From: Salisapilia sapeloensis CBS 127946
Taxonomy: Eukaryota > Protista > Oomycota
Assembly: GCA_023334545.1 (NCBI GenBank)
Contig: JAADVB010000065.1
Span: 15,761-79,760 of the forward strand
Direction of reading: 5' to 3'
Length of the DNA: 64,000 nucleotides
Shown here piece by piece: positions 50,301 through 58,393 of the stretch. The position numbers and the translations under genes are program-made. How positions within the stretch are numbered: the stretch's first letter is position 1; each line of letters starts with the position of its first letter. The notes beneath the pieces were generated by a model, which saw only the letters and a program-made list of their open reading frames with translations, was not told where the DNA came from and made no database searches.

Positions 50301-51128
50301 AGTCCTTGCAAGCCATCTATACGTATTCCTTCATTGAGGCCTTACACGACAAGTCCGAAGAAGCCGGCTGAAATTCGTGTGATTTCTAATCCATCTTTCG
50401 GCAGAAATGAAGATGGGAAAACACGCACACCTTGTCGGCCTGATACTACTGCGAACGACGTAGGCTGTTCATCCGGTTGGAGCCGTCATCGATTGCTTTT
50501 AGATAAGGCTGGGTGCAATGAGACGGTGATCAGTTGGAAGAATCATGAGGAAGAACGGAATGCAACTGCTCACAAGGTTCGAGCTTTGCGAGAGGAGGAA
50601 GACAGGGCAGTAGAAGCCGAGATTGTGGATCGCCGCTTGCGTCAACGGGAGAAAGCTGCCGAGATTGCAGGCGATAAAATGGCCATTGATGTCCAGCTGC
50701 AGCGCCAACGGTATGAACGAGAGATTGCAAAAATCGAGCAGCAAGAGAGGATGGATAAGGAGAAAATGGCGAGTCGGTGCAGGAAGCTAGCTCAGAAATT
50801 TGAAGACCAGTTTGTTGTCCAGACAGGAGCGATGATGCGTCTAAAGTCTACAAGCACGATCCAACGAAAGCTTAGAATGAAAGACGACGCTCGAACGCGA
50901 GAAATGATGCGTATCCGATCACGAGAAGAAGGCGAGAAGCGGAGGCGAGATCTTGCAGAGACGTCGATATTCGCTCGAAAGCACAGGACTAAGCAGGAAG
51001 TCAGAGTCCGTACGGAAGGGCAGTTGGAAAAAGCCAAAGCTACTGGGTTAAAGCGTTTGCGTGATATTCGTCGACGCATGCAAGAAGACCGTGATGTGAG
51101 GCAACAGTTGTGCCAACTTCTTCCATGA
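47315..51128 (+). CDS. Leucine-rich repeat and IQ domain protein (LRRIQ3-like), 3 exons
   Basis: N-terminal SDS22-like LRRs (LVVLNLQRNSI, LRYLDVSFNSI, LTFCFLEANAL, LLWLKLAGNP) with LRR cap LKAIDKFTVSDVE. IQ motifs VQRIVRGYLSR, VQKVTRGFLLR, MQATWWRY, LQRWWR. C-terminal coiled coil. ORF blocks 47315/47826/50061 are linked by introns. Confidence 0.72.
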
Positions 51129-51241
51129 TACCGTGTTGCTTTCTATCTCTTCAAGATCGTTGTGGTAATAATAAATTAAGGCACGTTCAACTTGATCCTT
51201 TAAATCGAAACGCTCTTCAAACACAAAGAAGGATAGAGCGA

Positions 51242-53176
51242 ATGAACAGTGCGACTGCCGGTTGGCGACCCACGACCTTGAGCGATGCCAGCAGGGAACG
51301 GTGGGCGCGTCTCCTGGTCAGGGAGCTAGCTGATTTGGGCTACGCTGGGGCTGCAAGTGAGCTTCAAAAAGAAGCCGGGGTGCAGCTTCGCTCGGATGCT
51401 ATGCGCAAGATACAGCAGTTTCTGCAAAATCAGGATTGGGCATCCGCGTTGGACATGGTGTTGAAAAAGAGTGAAGATGGGGGAGTAACGATGCAAACAG
51501 CGTCAGCCCAGAATGAAGCAGCACTGATCTTGCGAAAGCGTCAATTCATTCAAGCTGTGCTCGAGGGAGATTCCTCGACGGCTAGACGGGTTTTCCGAGA
51601 TAAACTGGCGCCGCATCACGCAATTGTACGTGCTTTGGGCTCATTTTTAAGGCAATGGTAGATTAATTTTCTTGCGATGTGACAGAGTGACGACGAGGTG
51701 GAAGATTTGGCGACGCTCCTGCTTTGTGAAAGTGAAGAGGATGTAGACATGATGGCTAAGGATGTGTGGCGAGAGCCTGACGTGATGAACTTTGTTGAAA
51801 CGTCTGCTGATTTTAATGAAGTCGTCCCGCAGGGTTCACTCCAGGTATGCTGTAGCTTTATACGAACACAACCGGGTATCTTTACATATATTGTTCCACT
51901 TGTAAAGTCAATGATGGCTCTCGGCGAACGAGATCTGTCGCGCGTGCTATCGAAAAAGACAATCTTTGCTCCGAAGGCTCATCAGTCGCTTTCAAAAGCC
52001 GGTCGAGTTGTCCCCCAGTGCTCGGACGTTTTGCTGATTCACCGATCCGATGTCCAGGAGATCTTATTCTCTCCAGACGGTAGACTCCTAGCGTCATGCT
52101 CAAAAGACGGCGCCATCCTTATCTGGAAGCTCCGAATCGCTGAGGCCAACTGCGGCACTCGTGCTTTGGTACGACACTATGTAACTTGTATCGGATATAA
52201 ATGCCAAAACTTACACGACGTAGCGTGCAAAGCTCATTCACCAATTGCCCAGTTTGCGTGATACGCCGGTGCAATCCGTCGCCTGGTCTCCGGACAGTAA
52301 GTACCTGCTGAGTTGCTGCGAAGGTAGCAACATTATCCAGCAGTGGAACTCGGGTGTATGTCGTTTTCATATGTGCATTAATGGAGCTCGAATGACACGC
52401 ATGGAGGTAGACTGGTCACCGTGAGCACGTGCTTCATCACCCGACAGAGTGTATCCAGGTCCTTCGGTGGGTGCCAAACGGAAAAAAGTTTCTAAGCGGC
52501 AGTGCCGACAACCGGCTCATCCTTTGGGTACGTCGTTCTGATAGCATTGCATCGATAGAGGTCGACTGACCAGTGATAGAACGCTGAGAGTGGTGGGATC
52601 GAGTGTCAATGGACCGGCCATCGCGTGCTGGACATAGCCGTGCATCCATGTGGAACACAGGCGTTTGTGTTGGTCTCTGCGTACAATATTTACATCGTCG
52701 ATCTCGAGTCTGAATCGAACGAACTTTTCTTCAGCTCGAAGAAGAAGATTGCTAAGATCACATTATCTCCGGATGACGGCCGCTTCCTCTTGGTGTCCTT
52801 TATCAAGTCGAAGGAAATTGGAGTCATCCCAGTAGGCAAGCATAAAGTGAAGACGGTGTGCAGGGGACTCGCCAGCCAACGATACATTTTGACGCCTTGC
52901 TTTGCAGGAAGACAGAACGAACTCGTCTTGTGCGGCGGAGAAGGTTTGTGTAATAGGTTTCTGTTGTTCTGTAGAAACTCATTTTGCGTAGACGCACGAT
53001 TATATGCTTGGAAAGTGGAAGATGGAGAGCTCGTGGTGTGCCAGGGCGGACACACGGGAACAATCAACTCTGTCCAGCGCCACCCGTGCTACCCGGAGAT
53101 TATCGCGACTGCCAGTGAAGACGAGACGGTGCGGCTTTGGACGCTACTGCCGGACACTGGGCGCCAGAGTGACTGA
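51242..53176 (+). CDS. LisH-CTLH-WD40 protein, WDR26/GID7-like, multi-exon
   Basis: LisH (RLLVRELADLGYAGAASELQKEAG), CTLH (IQQFLQNQDWASAL), and WD repeats HRSDVQEILFSPDGRLLASCSKDGAILIW, VAWSPDSKYLL, GHTGTINSVQRHP...IATASEDETVRLW. Confidence 0.82.
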
Positions 53177-53383
53177 GGCTCTTTCTATTCAATCCGTTTC
53201 ATGTCTTTCGTGCGTAGGATAAATATATCAAAGGATGAGAACTTTTCGTCAGTGTGTTGGTTGGTTTGCAGCATGCTGGATCGAGACGGTGGTCTAGCAA
53301 ACTATGGTACATTCACCATTAAGTGTACTGTAAATGACGCTAACGCTTCTAGCCGAACAGATACATGGAGGCTCGCAAAGTCC

Positions 53384-55934
53384 ATGGAGCATTTCGACAT
53401 GTTGGTGCAAGCCCAAAGTGCACAGAATGAGTCTACGCTCCGTCAACTGTGTCTTCGTGCGCTAAATCTCTTTCAGAACCTTCCATACTCTCCCATCACA
53501 TGGCTTTACCTTGTTCTTCTTGGCGCCGTGGCTGCACTCTACGGGTACCTCCCCTTCCATCATCACTGTTACCCCAATTATATCATATTGTTGCTAGACT
53601 GCTCATTGACGAAGGCATTCGGGGTCTACTTAACATTCGAGAGTACTTATACGAAGCAGGAGGAAGTAATACTGTCATCGGCTTCATGTTCTGGGCATCC
53701 TGGTGCTCTGTGGCAGGGGTCATGTCCACTGCTTGTGGTCACTTCCTTTCTCCATCTAGTGACGGATCGGGTATCCCTATCGTTCGAGCATTGTTCGCTG
53801 GCGTCTATCAGAACCCTGCTTCTGGCGTACTGTCAATGCGGACCTTTTTGGCAAGATCGGTCGGCACGATCCTATCATCTGCCTCTGGTCTTTCAGTTGG
53901 AAAGTCGGGTCCATACACACACCTGGTGGCAACTTTCGCCTACCACCTTGGCAACACGCGCTTTTTCCGACGATCTTACTTTGGTCCGGAATCCTTTTCG
54001 CACCTGAGAGCCGCCGTTGCATGCGGTATTACTGCATGCTTTGGTTCACCATTAGGTGGAGTGTTGTACAGCATTGAGGTGACAACTAAGTACTATGAGA
54101 TCAAATGTCTATGGGAAGGCGTGATTGGTGCTGCCATTTGTATGCTCGTGTTTCGCATGACAAGCTTTCTTCATCGAGATGCCCTGTTTGAAAAGACATC
54201 TTTTGAGCGCTTCGACATGGACTGGGACATGTTTGCCTTCCTCATTCTTGGTGTACTCACTGGCGTACGCACTCTGTTGTACATAGTCGCCTCTATTATT
54301 TAATATCGTTTACATGTAGCTTACCGCGGGTCTCTTCTGCAAGGTGGCACAGATAATCCGGATCATCCAGCAGAGGTTGCTCATGAGATATCGTAGTTCA
54401 GTTCTGAGTTGGCACCGACGACTCGTTCATGTTCTCATTATCTGCATGACAACCGCTGCTCTCACTTATCCAATGAGCATCATGCGCCTGTCGAATGGAG
54501 CAATCGTGAACGAAGTCTTTCGCCGAGAGCCGTTGAGCCGGCATGAATGGACGGAGTGGACCGAGTACCCTCTGGTTGCATTGATGGTGTACACTGTTTT
54601 AAAGTTTGTGCTAAGTGTTTTGCCGTGTGGAGCCCCCATCTCACAAGGAGTCTTTGCACCGTTGTTCACGATTGGCGCTGTTATGGGCCGTCTGTATGGT
54701 GAGACGCTAATGAAGTATTGGAACCCGTCCCAGTCTCCAGCCGCCTATGCTGTCGTTGGTGCTGCTTGTTTTGCATCATCAGCAACCCAGACCGTATCCA
54801 CGTCTGTGATCTTTTTCGAGCTAACGGGCCAACTCAGCCACCTAATTCCTGTAATGCTTTCGTGCATTGTGGCCTACTTCGTTAGTGGCACAGTTGCGCC
54901 GTCGATCTATGATATTCTGGCAGAGTGGGCGGGGCTACATGCCGTCTGCTTTGACGCTAATGAGTACCTATGGATTCAACAACAGGCATTTGCTTGCATG
55001 AAAGACCCAAAAGTAGTGCTTACGCGAGAGACAACGTACGCAGAGGCATTAGTTGCGATGGTGCGTACACAAAGTTGGTAGTATCATGTACGAAACTCAT
55101 GCGAGAGTACTTGTAGGAATCGTTTCCGAAAGAAGAATATTTTCCGGTCTGCGAGAGCAAGCAGAGTGCCGTTTTGCTGGTATTTTACTTTTGCAAGAAG
55201 TCCCTAGATGTGGATAACGTCTTTTACTACGCAGGGTTCGATTCGACGTCATGACCTGCAAGTCAGTATCAATCGCTTCCGATTGACAAGCAAAAGCGAA
55301 GTAGTTTTTAGTGCTCGCTTAATGAAGCCAATTCGGTGTGCTTATGTTTTTACCCACGATAGGAGACTAGCGAAGACGCTGAAAAACCGGCAGCTAGAAA
55401 TATTTTTAAGATGATTGCAGATACTTTGTCGCTATCACGCCACAAAGGAGTTGCGCGAATCGAAGACATGTCCCTCCTCAACTCCCGTGCTGCCAAAGAG
55501 AAGTCAGATATGAATGAGGTACATCATTTAATGTTGTAGCTGAATATGTAGATATTTATCCTTTCGTAGATCTTACAATTGGGACCTCCTTTTTCGCCGT
55601 GGTCGTATACGTCAGTTCCTATCGATTCATATCCACCCCAGGTATGTTCGTTGTCTTTTTTGTCTTAGCAGTGAATTCACAGACGTGATCATAGGTTGGC
55701 GAATACGTCTCACTCAACCACGTTCGAAAGATTGCATCCATGGCAATGTGGACGGAAGTTTATGTTGTGCATCATGGCCATTTAGTTGGGACGGTCAAAT
55801 TCGATTCTACTTTACACCACGGTCGCCGATTTAGTCAAAGCTCTGAACAACCAGTAATGGTGCCGAGTGGAAAGCATATGCTTAAGCCCAAAATCGTTGA
55901 GAGTCAAGTAGCAAATGAAGGCGAGTCGTTATAA
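53384..55934 (+). CDS. CLC-family chloride channel with two CBS domains, multi-exon (5' end uncertain)
   Basis: Signatures GSGIP (53764-53778), GKSGP (53899-53913), FGSPLGGVLYSIEVT, GVFAPLFTIGA, ELTGQ, PSIYD. CBS-like segments lie in the intron-rich 3' part, ending at TAA 55934. Confidence 0.92.
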
Positions 55935-56176
55935 CTCAGAAATACACCAACTAGACGAATAGTCGACTTGACCACTTGAATAGAGTTTGTTGCCGTTAAA
56001 GGTATTTTTATCGACACAGGGAGCCAGAATCAACAACAACGCTACTCACTGAGTTAAAAAGAGACATTCGAGATTTACCTTGATTTCAGGGTGGTCACCT
56101 AAGTTGTCAAAACTCGTATTATAAGTTCATGTCTTGGGCACTGATGTTTTGGGCGTCTAATTTTTTCGTCCTATAA

Positions 56177-56551: not shown

Positions 56552-58393
56552 ATGCAGCGAAACGAAGTCGAAGCTTTTCTGCCCGTAGGCCTTGGCACCA
56601 CTGACCTTTGGCGTAATCTAAGTCTAGAACTTGATGGTAAAACGACGCTGGAGAAGCCTCATGTATCGAAGAAGGTGCTTATAAAAGGCATCAAGATGCA
56701 GTCGGAGGCTCTGAAATTCCTCGTGGACGAAATGGAGCGTATGCACGAAAAGATGGCCATTTTGGAGCGTGAAAGCAAGAACACACAAAAGTACGTGGAG
56801 CGCGTAAATGGAAAGCTGATCACATTGCAAGGTCAGCATGAGGAGGTGGTAATTCAAACGAACGAACTAGCTGTCACGCAAGAAGAGCAGGGTATTAAGC
56901 TGCAACAGATTGATATATTGCATGAGGCAGTCGAAGCAGCGAAGCAAGAGGTGAGAGATATGGGTCCTAGGATTGATGCTGTCCGAGATGTACACGACCA
57001 GTTTGTCTCAAAGGTAGAAGAAGACATGAATGCAATGCGTCAAGAGCAGGCTTCGACGCAAGAATTCGCCATGCAGTTAGAAGATCGCATGAATACTGAA
57101 GAAAAGGAATTATTCCTTCACTCGGACAAGATTATACACGGGAAGCTTTCTCTAGCAATGTGGATGGAGCAAGCTGATAAAGATAAGAAAAAACAGAGCG
57201 AATCACTGAAGGAGTGCATTGAGAAGATGGACAAGCAGGGAAAGAATGTCAAGAGTATGATGTTGGAAACCCGTCGGACGCTCGATGATAACACTTGTGC
57301 CGTGGAAGACGTACAGCGTGAGCTGCTGACCAAGGCTGATCGGCTAAAGATTGAAGAACTGATTGAGTCTAAGTACGAGGAGATATGTAATCAAGTGGAT
57401 AAAGCGTTGTCCTCTGTTCTGGGTGAAGAAGATGAATTTAAGCGTGTGAGTCAAGAGTTGCAGGATCTCGTCGCTAGTCTTGGCGAGAATAAGGCTGACA
57501 AGAAGGATTTGCTGGAAGTGAAGGAACAGGTCTTGTATGATTCTAGAGTGCGTCAGCAGGTCGAGAATCTGCGTTCATTCGTAGACTTGAAGATGAATCG
57601 TGACGATGTGACTGCAGCGCTTAACAGTAAAGCTGACAAAGATGAAATGCTTCGTCTGCTTAAGGAGTTGTCTCATGGGTATGTTTTCATACATTATTGA
57701 GTTGTACCGGATACCAATGCTAACGGTCATGTAAACGACAGTATGAACGCTTCGATTCAGAGAGCACAACAGATGATGGCTGAACCCGAGAATGCCTTGC
57801 TTACCGGGAAGAACGCGATTGCGAAGACAGGTAATAGCAATAATGGCCACATGTACGGTCATGGGCATTCTCACAACCACGGACATACTTCCAGTCGTGG
57901 CGGTATGCTGCCAAGTCTTGACCGAGAAAAGTGCTTATCTTGTAACTCGACCATACGTAACGATACCGCCAGTGGCTCCGGAGGCCCTGTGATGAATAAA
58001 AATCCTTTTGCAATGACACCGACTTACGGTGGCGGCTTTCCACGGTCCGGAATAACATCTTTGGACAAGCAGACGATGCGCAACCACTCTCAACAGCAAA
58101 TATCTCGCTACAGCGGTCAGCGAGAGGAAGACGGAGATCTTAGGGTGTTAGTCGAAAGCGCCAGTGATGGGTACGGTCATCAAGTCTTTTTATATTGAAG
58201 AGATATGCTAACGTGTATCATGTGCAGCTACTTGATGGGCGTTGATGGTCACATGTACCAAGCCGATGTGAAGTTGTCAGCGCTTCAGTTTAACGAGCAT
58301 ACTGCGTCTGCAAATAGCCCTAATGCGCGGGTGGTTCTGCCAGGCCACTTGCAAAGAACAAACCATTACAGCGTATACGATGAAGAAGGGTAG
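56552..58393 (+). CDS. Long coiled-coil protein with KADK repeats and C-terminal CLSC motif, 3 exons
   Basis: Heptad-rich 56552-57678 region with KADR/KADK/KMNR/KADK units. Exon 2 contains EKCLSCN and exon 3 YLMGVDGHMYQAD. GT-AG introns join the blocks in frame. Confidence 0.7.

Follow-up and report, generated by a model that had tools for sequence, protein, structure and literature searches.

CLC proteins share one fold that can work as a channel or as an exchanger coupled to protons; a gating glutamate is central to both modes. Within a 64,000-nucleotide stretch of the genome of Salisapilia sapeloensis CBS 127946 (contig JAADVB010000065.1, positions 15,761 to 79,760; the whole stretch is referred to here as the window), which shows the short introns with GT..AG ends of eukaryotic DNA, the plus strand carries a CLC gene from 53201 to 55934 whose product has serine at the position of this glutamate. 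Comparison with relatives revealed that loss of the glutamate is a clade-wide trait of peronosporalean oomycetes and is not peculiar to the window gene.

Inspection of the exon 2 translation reveals three of the motifs that define the pore. The selectivity-filter motif GSGIP, which contains the central serine (Ser-cen), lies at 53764-53778 and is followed by isoleucine at 53779-53781. The gate motif reads GKSGP at 53899-53913 (GGA AAG TCG GGT CCA), the serine codon TCG being at 53905-53907, and SIEVT is found at 54070-54084, with valine (54079-54081) at the internal proton-glutamate position. The exon 3 translation supplies GVFAP at 54647-54661, an instance of the GxFxP pore motif, and the central tyrosine at 54908-54910, in PSIYD, which is kept in all oomycete members. 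A sequence-only reading of this DNA had listed GKSGP, the valine of SIEVT, the serine of GSGIP followed by isoleucine, and the tyrosine of SIYD, and all of these are present in the exon translations and in alignments made with phmmer.

In all searches, alignments and trees, the window protein was compared exon by exon. Exons 2 and 3 matched the Pfam profile Voltage_CLC (PF00654) with E values of 3.7e-27 (95.8 bits) and 2.1e-28 (99.9 bits), respectively, against a cut-off of 24.8 bits, and spanned positions 2-174 and 195-345 of the 346 in the profile. By this score, and by the presence of GSGIP, GxFxP and the central tyrosine, the window protein is a member of the CLC family. The canonical G(K/R)EGP gating motif is absent, GKSGP standing in its place; CLC-K and plant CLC-G are also accepted members without the glutamate. 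When exon 2 was compared with solved structures by phmmer, human ClC-2 and ClC-1 were the best matches (E ∼1e-25), ahead of CmCLC, ClC-3, bovine and human ClC-K, ClC-7, AtCLCa, ClC-6 and ClC-ec1, in that order. In the alignments to these two human channels, GKSGP fell on their GKEGP and SIEVT on their SIEVT, and the serine therefore occupies the gating-glutamate site and the valine the internal proton-glutamate site. The Pfam match and the alignment to ClC-1 and ClC-2 thus bear out the earlier claim of a genuine CLC that lacks the gating glutamate. The signature of an exchanger, a gating glutamate together with an internal proton glutamate, is replaced in the window protein by serine and valine. 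Traits of the ClC-0/1/2/K type that were found are the internal-site valine, a SIEVT identical to that of ClC-1 and ClC-2, and the position of these two channels as the best solved-structure matches.

The gene is intact, transcribed and correctly spliced and comprises eight exons. Contigs from four public runs were placed on 53150-56050, of which X1 is DNA and X2 to X4 come from a second, earlier study. The X1 contig is collinear with the window and is possibly the assembly's own source. Contigs of X2 to X4 lack six stretches of 51-62 nucleotides, all with GT..AG ends, and are therefore derived from spliced RNA; the introns removed in these RNA-like contigs are 54265-54319, 55061-55116, 55180-55234, 55301-55362, 55519-55569 and 55642-55694. 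The gate codon is covered by X1, by X3 (53597-54264) and by X2 (53882-54264) with zero differing letters. Given that the RNA-like contigs of X2 and X3 are identical across the codon, TCG is transcribed as written, and the agreement of all three runs upholds the view of the sequence-only reading that the codon is not a sequencing error.

Exon 1 (53201-53544) opens a reading frame at 53201 and ends at 53544, exactly where RNA contigs stop. Translation starts at one of two in-frame ATGs, 53201 or 53273, for predicted proteins of 782 and 758 residues, respectively. This exon encodes the first half of helix B and an N-terminus whose conserved DTWRLAKSMEHF motif (from 53360) could be aligned to the N-terminal ends of orthologues from Pythium, Albugo, Phytophthora and Aphanomyces. 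Exon 2 (53598-54264, translated in frame over 53599-54264) covers helices B to I and includes the Ser-cen motif, the gate position and the internal-glutamate position. Exon 3 (54320-55060), bounded by RNA joints from 54264 to 54320 and from 55060 to 55117, completes the membrane domain with its second half and continues into the start of the cytoplasmic C-terminus. The CBS1 region falls on exon 4 (55117-55179), which was placed by RNA joints, splice sites and reading phase, and on exon 5 (55235-55300), in which GSIRRHDL equals the orthologue consensus. Exon 6 (55363-55518) forms the linker between the CBS domains, exon 7 (55570-55641) the start of the CBS2 region and exon 8 (55695-55934) CBS2, where the frame closes in phase 0 at the stop codon TAA (55932-55934); exons 5 to 8 are likewise bounded by RNA joints. 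All eight exons lie on the plus strand. Intron 1 (53545-53597; 53 nucleotides, GT..AG, plus strand) is predicted from gap-free homology over the junction and from contig breaks at 53544 and 53597. It was found to be kept in one X2 contig (record 2, which reads through 53365-53860), and its borders coincide exactly with breaks in contigs of X3 and X4; spliced and unspliced forms both appear to be present.

A Pfam CBS scan of the C-terminal exons of the window gene and of three full-length orthologues gave no match. A profile made from 12 orthologue C-termini matched the CBS-pair structure of ClC-0 (2D4Z) in two stretches with an E value of 1.9e-8, and also matched ClC-1 and ClC-Ka. When the window exons were compared with this orthologue profile, matches were obtained in order for the last 54 residues of exon 3 (99.6%), for exon 5 (88.5%) and for exon 8 (98.3%), those for exons 5 and 8 by hhalign. 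By these results the window protein has a divergent cytoplasmic CBS pair, linked indirectly through the orthologue profile.

Exon 2 was run against a representative library of 1.84 billion proteins, and a word-index search with the full-length Phytophthora rubi protein brought in further, named proteins of many oomycetes. The closest matches to exon 2 came from Phytophthora, Pythium insidiosum and Aphanomyces, at 47-57% identity, and orthologues from Pythium, Globisporangium, Phytophthora and Albugo alike share 55-65% identity with the window protein. At the gate column of 268 homologues, 201 have glutamate, 57 another residue and 10 a gap. All 23 of the other peronosporalean orthologues and paralogues sampled have alanine, serine or glycine (GR(A/S/G)GP); this set includes three Phytophthora paralogue groups, Pythium oligandrum, P. 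insidiosum, two Globisporangium species, Albugo laibachii and several further assemblies. By contrast, GKEGP is present in seven of seven Saprolegniales proteins (three from Aphanomyces, two from Saprolegnia and one each from Achlya and Thraustotheca). Only the smallest side chains are thus seen at the gate of the 24 Glu-less proteins, alanine being the commonest; serine is found in the window protein and two Phytophthora proteins, and glycine in one Phytophthora paralogue group. Within the Glu-less clade, serine would need about three origins (the window protein, the fragment P0007, and the group b pair of Phytophthora nicotianae and P. cactorum). The gate codons, GAA in Saprolegniales, GCT in Pythium oligandrum and TCG in the window, fit a path from glutamate through alanine to serine by single nonsynonymous steps. 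The earlier argument that a change from GAG to TCG would need two substitutions is therefore moot, since alanine is the commonest state of the clade and these codons allow single steps.

Phytophthora has three Glu-less paralogues, and the S. sapeloensis genome, Pythium, Globisporangium and Albugo have one each. Group a of Phytophthora (P0151/P0162) carries GRAGP and SIEVT, group b (P0166/P0171) GR(A/S)GP and GIEVT, and group c (P0179/P0184) GRGGP and PSFYD, with SIEAT in five of its six members and SIEVT in that of P. capsici. The protein P0172 of Phytophthora pseudosyringae bears the source name “Dipeptidyl peptidase 2” yet is a 714-residue CLC of group b, and the name is probably wrong. Other departures from glutamate at the gate (V, L, Q or D) were also observed among protist and metagenomic homologues. 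The metagenomic proteins P0089, P0098, P0129 and P0133 form a separate clade, distinct from vertebrate CLC-K, with valine at the gate (GK/RVGP); their central tyrosine is replaced by phenylalanine in P0089, P0098 and P0129 and by asparagine in P0133, and P0089 and P0098 have GVFGP, as do Glu-less oomycete proteins. Single variants are GRLGP (P0094), GKQGP (P0130, Vermistella), GRDGP (P0138) and GRQGP (P0231).

A tree of the exon 2 region was computed for 77 proteins with IQ-TREE under LG+C20 with posterior mean site frequencies (PMSF) after removal of the three trait columns; supports are given as ultrafast bootstrap/SH-aLRT (Shimodaira-Hasegawa-like approximate likelihood ratio test). The 24 Glu-less oomycete rows, the window protein included, formed one clade (100/98). 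Saprolegniales formed another (100/99), the two were grouped together at 96/82, and the wider oomycete subfamily was supported at 100/100. A separate, quick tree of the exon 3 region gave 99 for the Glu-less clade, 98 for Saprolegniales and 99 for both together. By these trees the gating glutamate was lost once, in an old event after the split from Saprolegniales, and was replaced by a small neutral residue. The oomycete subfamily did not fall inside the animal channel clade in trees whose deeper branches are poorly supported, and the ClC-K of bichir (P0077, GKVGP) falls inside the animal ClC-2 clade (SH-aLRT 100), away from the oomycete clade. Because ClC-K is nested among animal ClC-2 proteins and the oomycete proteins form their own clade, the losses are independent, as the sequence-only reading had proposed. 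Shared ancestry with CLC-K was considered and is rejected by the trees.

Several further columns were found to have changed together with the gate: they do not vary in Saprolegniales, show there the residue usual in other Glu-bearing relatives, and are altered in the whole of the Glu-less clade. The residue after GSGIP, which in Glu-bearing relatives is nearly always E, Q or D (the exceptions being A in P0013 and F in the S. sapeloensis paralogue L003), changes from E/Q to V, T, R, K or I, and is isoleucine in the window protein. Two and five residues beyond this site, K is replaced by R and L by F (exon-2 columns 63 and 66). Four new invariant acidic residues are present at exon-2 columns 167 (A to E), 173 (Q/R to E), 198 (T to E) and 208 (G to D), the first two of which come 7 and 13 residues past the internal-glutamate position. 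In exon 3, L is replaced by A or S in GAPIS before GxFxP, and GIFTP of Saprolegniales becomes GVF(G/A)P, the other Glu-less orthologues having GVFGP and the window protein GVFAP. Ser-cen, the phenylalanine of GxFxP and the central tyrosine are unchanged across the clade. At the columns that define the subfamily the window protein has S, I, R, F, E, E, E and D, and a WDR26 gene lies upstream; the protein belongs to the peronosporalean Glu-less CLC subfamily defined here.

The 22.4-Mb S. sapeloensis assembly contains five CLC loci. The gate glutamate is kept in the other four, and only the window copy lacks it. Paralogues L002 and L003 have GKEGP with an xxEVT motif, and L005 has GKEGP with TLEE and is of exchanger type. 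The remaining paralogue, L004 (1108-3435 of G000:C436), is a single exon of 775 residues with GSGVS for GSGIP, GTEGA for GKEGP, and SLEVT, and its gate glutamate is kept.

The neighbourhood of the gene was also compared. Directly upstream on the plus strand lies a separate LisH-WDR26/WD40 gene (51110-53176), recognized by Pfam LisH_WDR26 and WD40 matches, and the order in the window is a leucine-rich repeat (LRR) gene, this gene and then CLC. In Pythium oligandrum the order on one strand is LRR, two aminotransferases, LisH-WDR26/WD40 and CLC. Given this neighbourhood common to the window and P. oligandrum, and gene models elsewhere in which WD40 and CLC are fused, the window gene is the positional orthologue of the GRAGP/GRSGP genes. 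In Aphanomyces and Saprolegnia the CLC neighbours are instead PCO_ADO upstream and GCIP_N downstream, so that the sister relationship of Saprolegniales is drawn from the trees and not from gene order. An Aminotran_1_2 gene is found near CLC in Aphanomyces and Pythium, and none is present between the LRR and WDR26 genes in the window. Downstream, at 56552-57700, lies a 382-residue open reading frame rich in Glu, Lys and Gln, without a Pfam match; at the P. oligandrum locus an unannotated gene of 568 residues follows CLC directly on the same strand.

The LisH-WDR26/WD40 protein is fused to CLC in public models from Phytophthora nicotianae, P. kernoviae, Globisporangium splendens and Pythium insidiosum (P0171, P0189, P0205 and P0154/P0002). 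In P. oligandrum (locus L006, 5401-10695) WD40 and CLC are two genes 339 nucleotides apart, and in the window the WD40 stop (53176) is followed after only 24 nucleotides by the first in-frame CLC ATG (53201). The fusion models, whose recognition is a practical outcome of the comparison, are probably annotation errors. Near this boundary, a stretch of 63 nucleotides with CT..AC ends (53302-53364) is skipped in RNA-like contigs whose mean depth is high (89-183). Read on the minus strand, the skipped stretch is a canonical GT..AG intron (GTATCT...CCATAG) that overlaps the CLC 5′ coding region just past the WDR26-like stop. The longest open reading frame of the spliced minus-strand form is at most 64 residues, and the joint may reflect a transcript that is antisense or non-coding, or overlapping transcripts merged by unstranded assembly.

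Among known systems, the vertebrate CLC-K proteins (ClC-Ka/Kb and bovine ClC-K) resemble the window protein in the natural loss of the gating glutamate, the internal valine, the serine of GSGIP, the central tyrosine and the CBS pair, and by analogy with them the oomycete protein would be predicted to stay open across a broad range of voltages (PMC5362633). CLC-K differs in its separate origin, in having valine at the gate where the oomycete proteins have serine, alanine or glycine, and in keeping the glutamate after GSGIP, which is lost in the oomycete clade; nothing points to a barttin-like partner of the oomycete proteins. As a structure match to the window protein, CLC-K (E 5e-18) is also weaker than ClC-2 and ClC-1. 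With serine at the gate and a tree position apart, the window protein falls outside the CLC-K clade. The earlier appeal to CLC-K as a natural precedent holds in that CLC-K lacks the gating glutamate, but CLC-K is not the sole precedent, since plant CLC-G is also reported without it (PMC7733266).

Plant CLC-G (for example AtCLCg and PgCLC-G) shares with the oomycete proteins a lineage-wide substitution of the gating glutamate and a filter serine, and has been read as channel-like on sequence grounds alone (PMC7733266). CLC-G belongs to plant clade I with CLC-A to CLC-D (PMC7733266), whereas the oomycete proteins are nearest in sequence to ClC-2 and ClC-1 and have the internal valine; CLC-G lay outside the tree sample. 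ClC-2, ClC-1 and ClC-0 share SIEVT and GSGIP with the window protein and resemble it in the segment of helix G as well as in the structure matches, and the C-terminal profile matches the CBS pairs of ClC-0 and ClC-1; they differ in having GKEGP and glutamate-based fast gating. Closer still in the trees, the Saprolegniales proteins of Aphanomyces, Saprolegnia, Achlya and Thraustotheca are sister to the Glu-less clade in both regions, are 41-47% identical and have the same SIEVT, GSGIP, PSIYD and N-terminal DTW..S.EHF motifs, but retain the gating glutamate, glutamine after GSGIP, lysine and leucine at exon-2 columns 63 and 66, and GIFTP. The oomycete change from a carboxylate to a small neutral side chain is also like that in the engineered mutants ClC-ec1 E148A/Q, ClC-0 E166, ClC-5 E211A (“unc”) and ClC-7 “unc” (PMC5362633). 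These mutants carry single changes, in contrast to the oomycete loss, which is ancient and is accompanied by at least seven other clade-fixed substitutions.

The engineered mutants provide the basis for predicting the consequences for gating and H+ coupling (PMC5362633). Neutralization of the gating glutamate removes gating that depends on voltage and Cl− from CLC channels and turns exchangers into passive Cl− conductors (PMC5362633). With both glutamates absent and the anion-coordinating residues constrained, and by analogy with CLC-K and with the neutralized mutants of every CLC tested, an H+-uncoupled, passive anion conductance would be the most likely function, and the window protein, as a CLC of the Glu-less peronosporalean subfamily, probably provides such a conductance without a carboxylate fast gate. 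The conductance would be chloride-preferring, passive and uncoupled from H+; with the carboxylate fast gate lost, it would be weakly voltage dependent, and any regulation would act through the common gate and the CBS domains. Both channel rates and the slow rates of an uncoupled transporter are possible. A physiological role in anion or volume homeostasis may be guessed at. The uncoupled, largely gate-free channel and the part in osmoregulation put forward in the sequence-only reading are likewise inferences.

A different pore function was considered in which the open external site and the changes after GSGIP suit another or bulkier anion, such as nitrate, bicarbonate or an organic anion. The restriction of the gate to the smallest side chains in all 24 proteins, compared with valine in CLC-K, would fit this, as would the co-fixed K to R and L to F changes after GSGIP, the G/A after the phenylalanine of GxFxP and the L to A/S change in GAPIS; a role for CLCs as a path for nitrate has also been suggested in P. 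infestans (PMC5176271). The filter, however, keeps serine and not the proline associated with nitrate preference (PMC5362633, PMC7733266), and an altered substrate is considered unlikely. That the codon is an error of sequencing or assembly, or the gene a decaying pseudogene, would be suggested by how rare the residue is and by the length of the exon-2 branch, and by nothing else. The same letters are present in DNA and in spliced RNA-like contigs of a second study, the eight-exon frame is intact, and the same loss is found in 23 proteins from other genera. The possibility raised in the sequence-only reading that would have undone it, orthologues that all have glutamate and a decaying window copy, was examined with the same outcome: the orthologues also lack the glutamate, and the transcripts are spliced. 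Error and pseudogene are refuted by the contig agreement, the intact frame and the clade-wide loss, and an artefact of this kind is exceedingly improbable.

Two further explanations would deny the protein an uncoupled conductance. It might be a non-conducting or regulatory CLC subunit that forms heterodimers with a Glu-bearing paralogue, or a scaffold or sensor acting via its CBS domains. Internal-glutamate mutants of ClC-5 and ClC-7 are indeed transport-deficient (PMC5362633), and the four other CLC genes of the genome are possible partners. Strict conservation of Ser-cen, GxFxP and the central tyrosine in the clade would nevertheless be unexpected for a dead pore, the conducting ClC-0/1/2/K channels likewise have valine at the internal site, and tolerance of only alanine, serine or glycine at the gate suggests selection on the pore itself; a subunit of this type is therefore quite unlikely. 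Alternatively, the protein could still be a coupled Cl−/H+ exchanger in which one of the new acidic residues (column 167, 173, 198 or 208) acts as a surrogate gating or proton glutamate. That four invariant acidic residues arose on the branch of the loss is in keeping with this, and CmCLC exchanges protons with threonine at the internal site, so that other H+ routes exist (PMC5362633). Coupling in the absence of the gating glutamate is not known for any CLC, however, and every neutralization of it uncouples (PMC5362633); moreover, columns 167 and 173 are not beside the external site in the sequence. Retained coupling by this route is very unlikely.

For the passive anion conductance itself, the clade-wide conservation of Ser-cen, GVF(G/A)P and the central tyrosine argues for a working pore, and a number of points weigh on the other side. 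The window exon 2 sits on a long branch (0.63) in the exon-2 tree, and the protein was placed from separate exons. The four acidic residues appeared on the same branch as the glutamate loss. In ClC-5, neutralization of the internal glutamate abolishes transport (PMC5362633); given that this mutant is dead, a protein without both glutamates need not conduct. The internal valine, which the sequence-only reading had taken as a mark of channels, is by itself no sign of one: it is present in nearly all of the Glu-bearing protist relatives found, and the red-algal CmCLC, with threonine at this site, is an exchanger (PMC5362633). No functional data on any oomycete CLC were found in the literature searched.

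Few natural CLC subfamilies lack the gating glutamate. Functional studies exist for CLC-K, and plant CLC-G has been read as channel-like from sequence; the oomycetes add a third, independent lineage. Although Glu-less CLC subfamilies as such are already known, the oomycete clade has apparently not been described before: no paper linking oomycetes with the gating glutamate was found in the literature searched, and papers on Phytophthora and Plasmopara mention CLCs only briefly. The lineage is conserved across plant- and animal-pathogenic peronosporalean oomycetes, with three paralogues in Phytophthora, and its value lies in a Glu-bearing sister group suited to reciprocal mutagenesis together with a short list of co-fixed substitutions. 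More tentatively, the Glu-less clade and its Saprolegniales sister may form a natural before-and-after pair for the way in which a gated or coupled CLC became an open channel, separately from the case in animals, in which the co-fixed changes are functionally linked to the loss of the gate; this is possible but doubtful. If true, the co-fixed changes would point to residues that bear on the old question of how CLC channels and CLC transporters differ. If the Glu-less proteins are open anion pores, they would be relevant to turgor, volume and anion homeostasis in oomycetes and would differ from host CLCs at defined pore positions.

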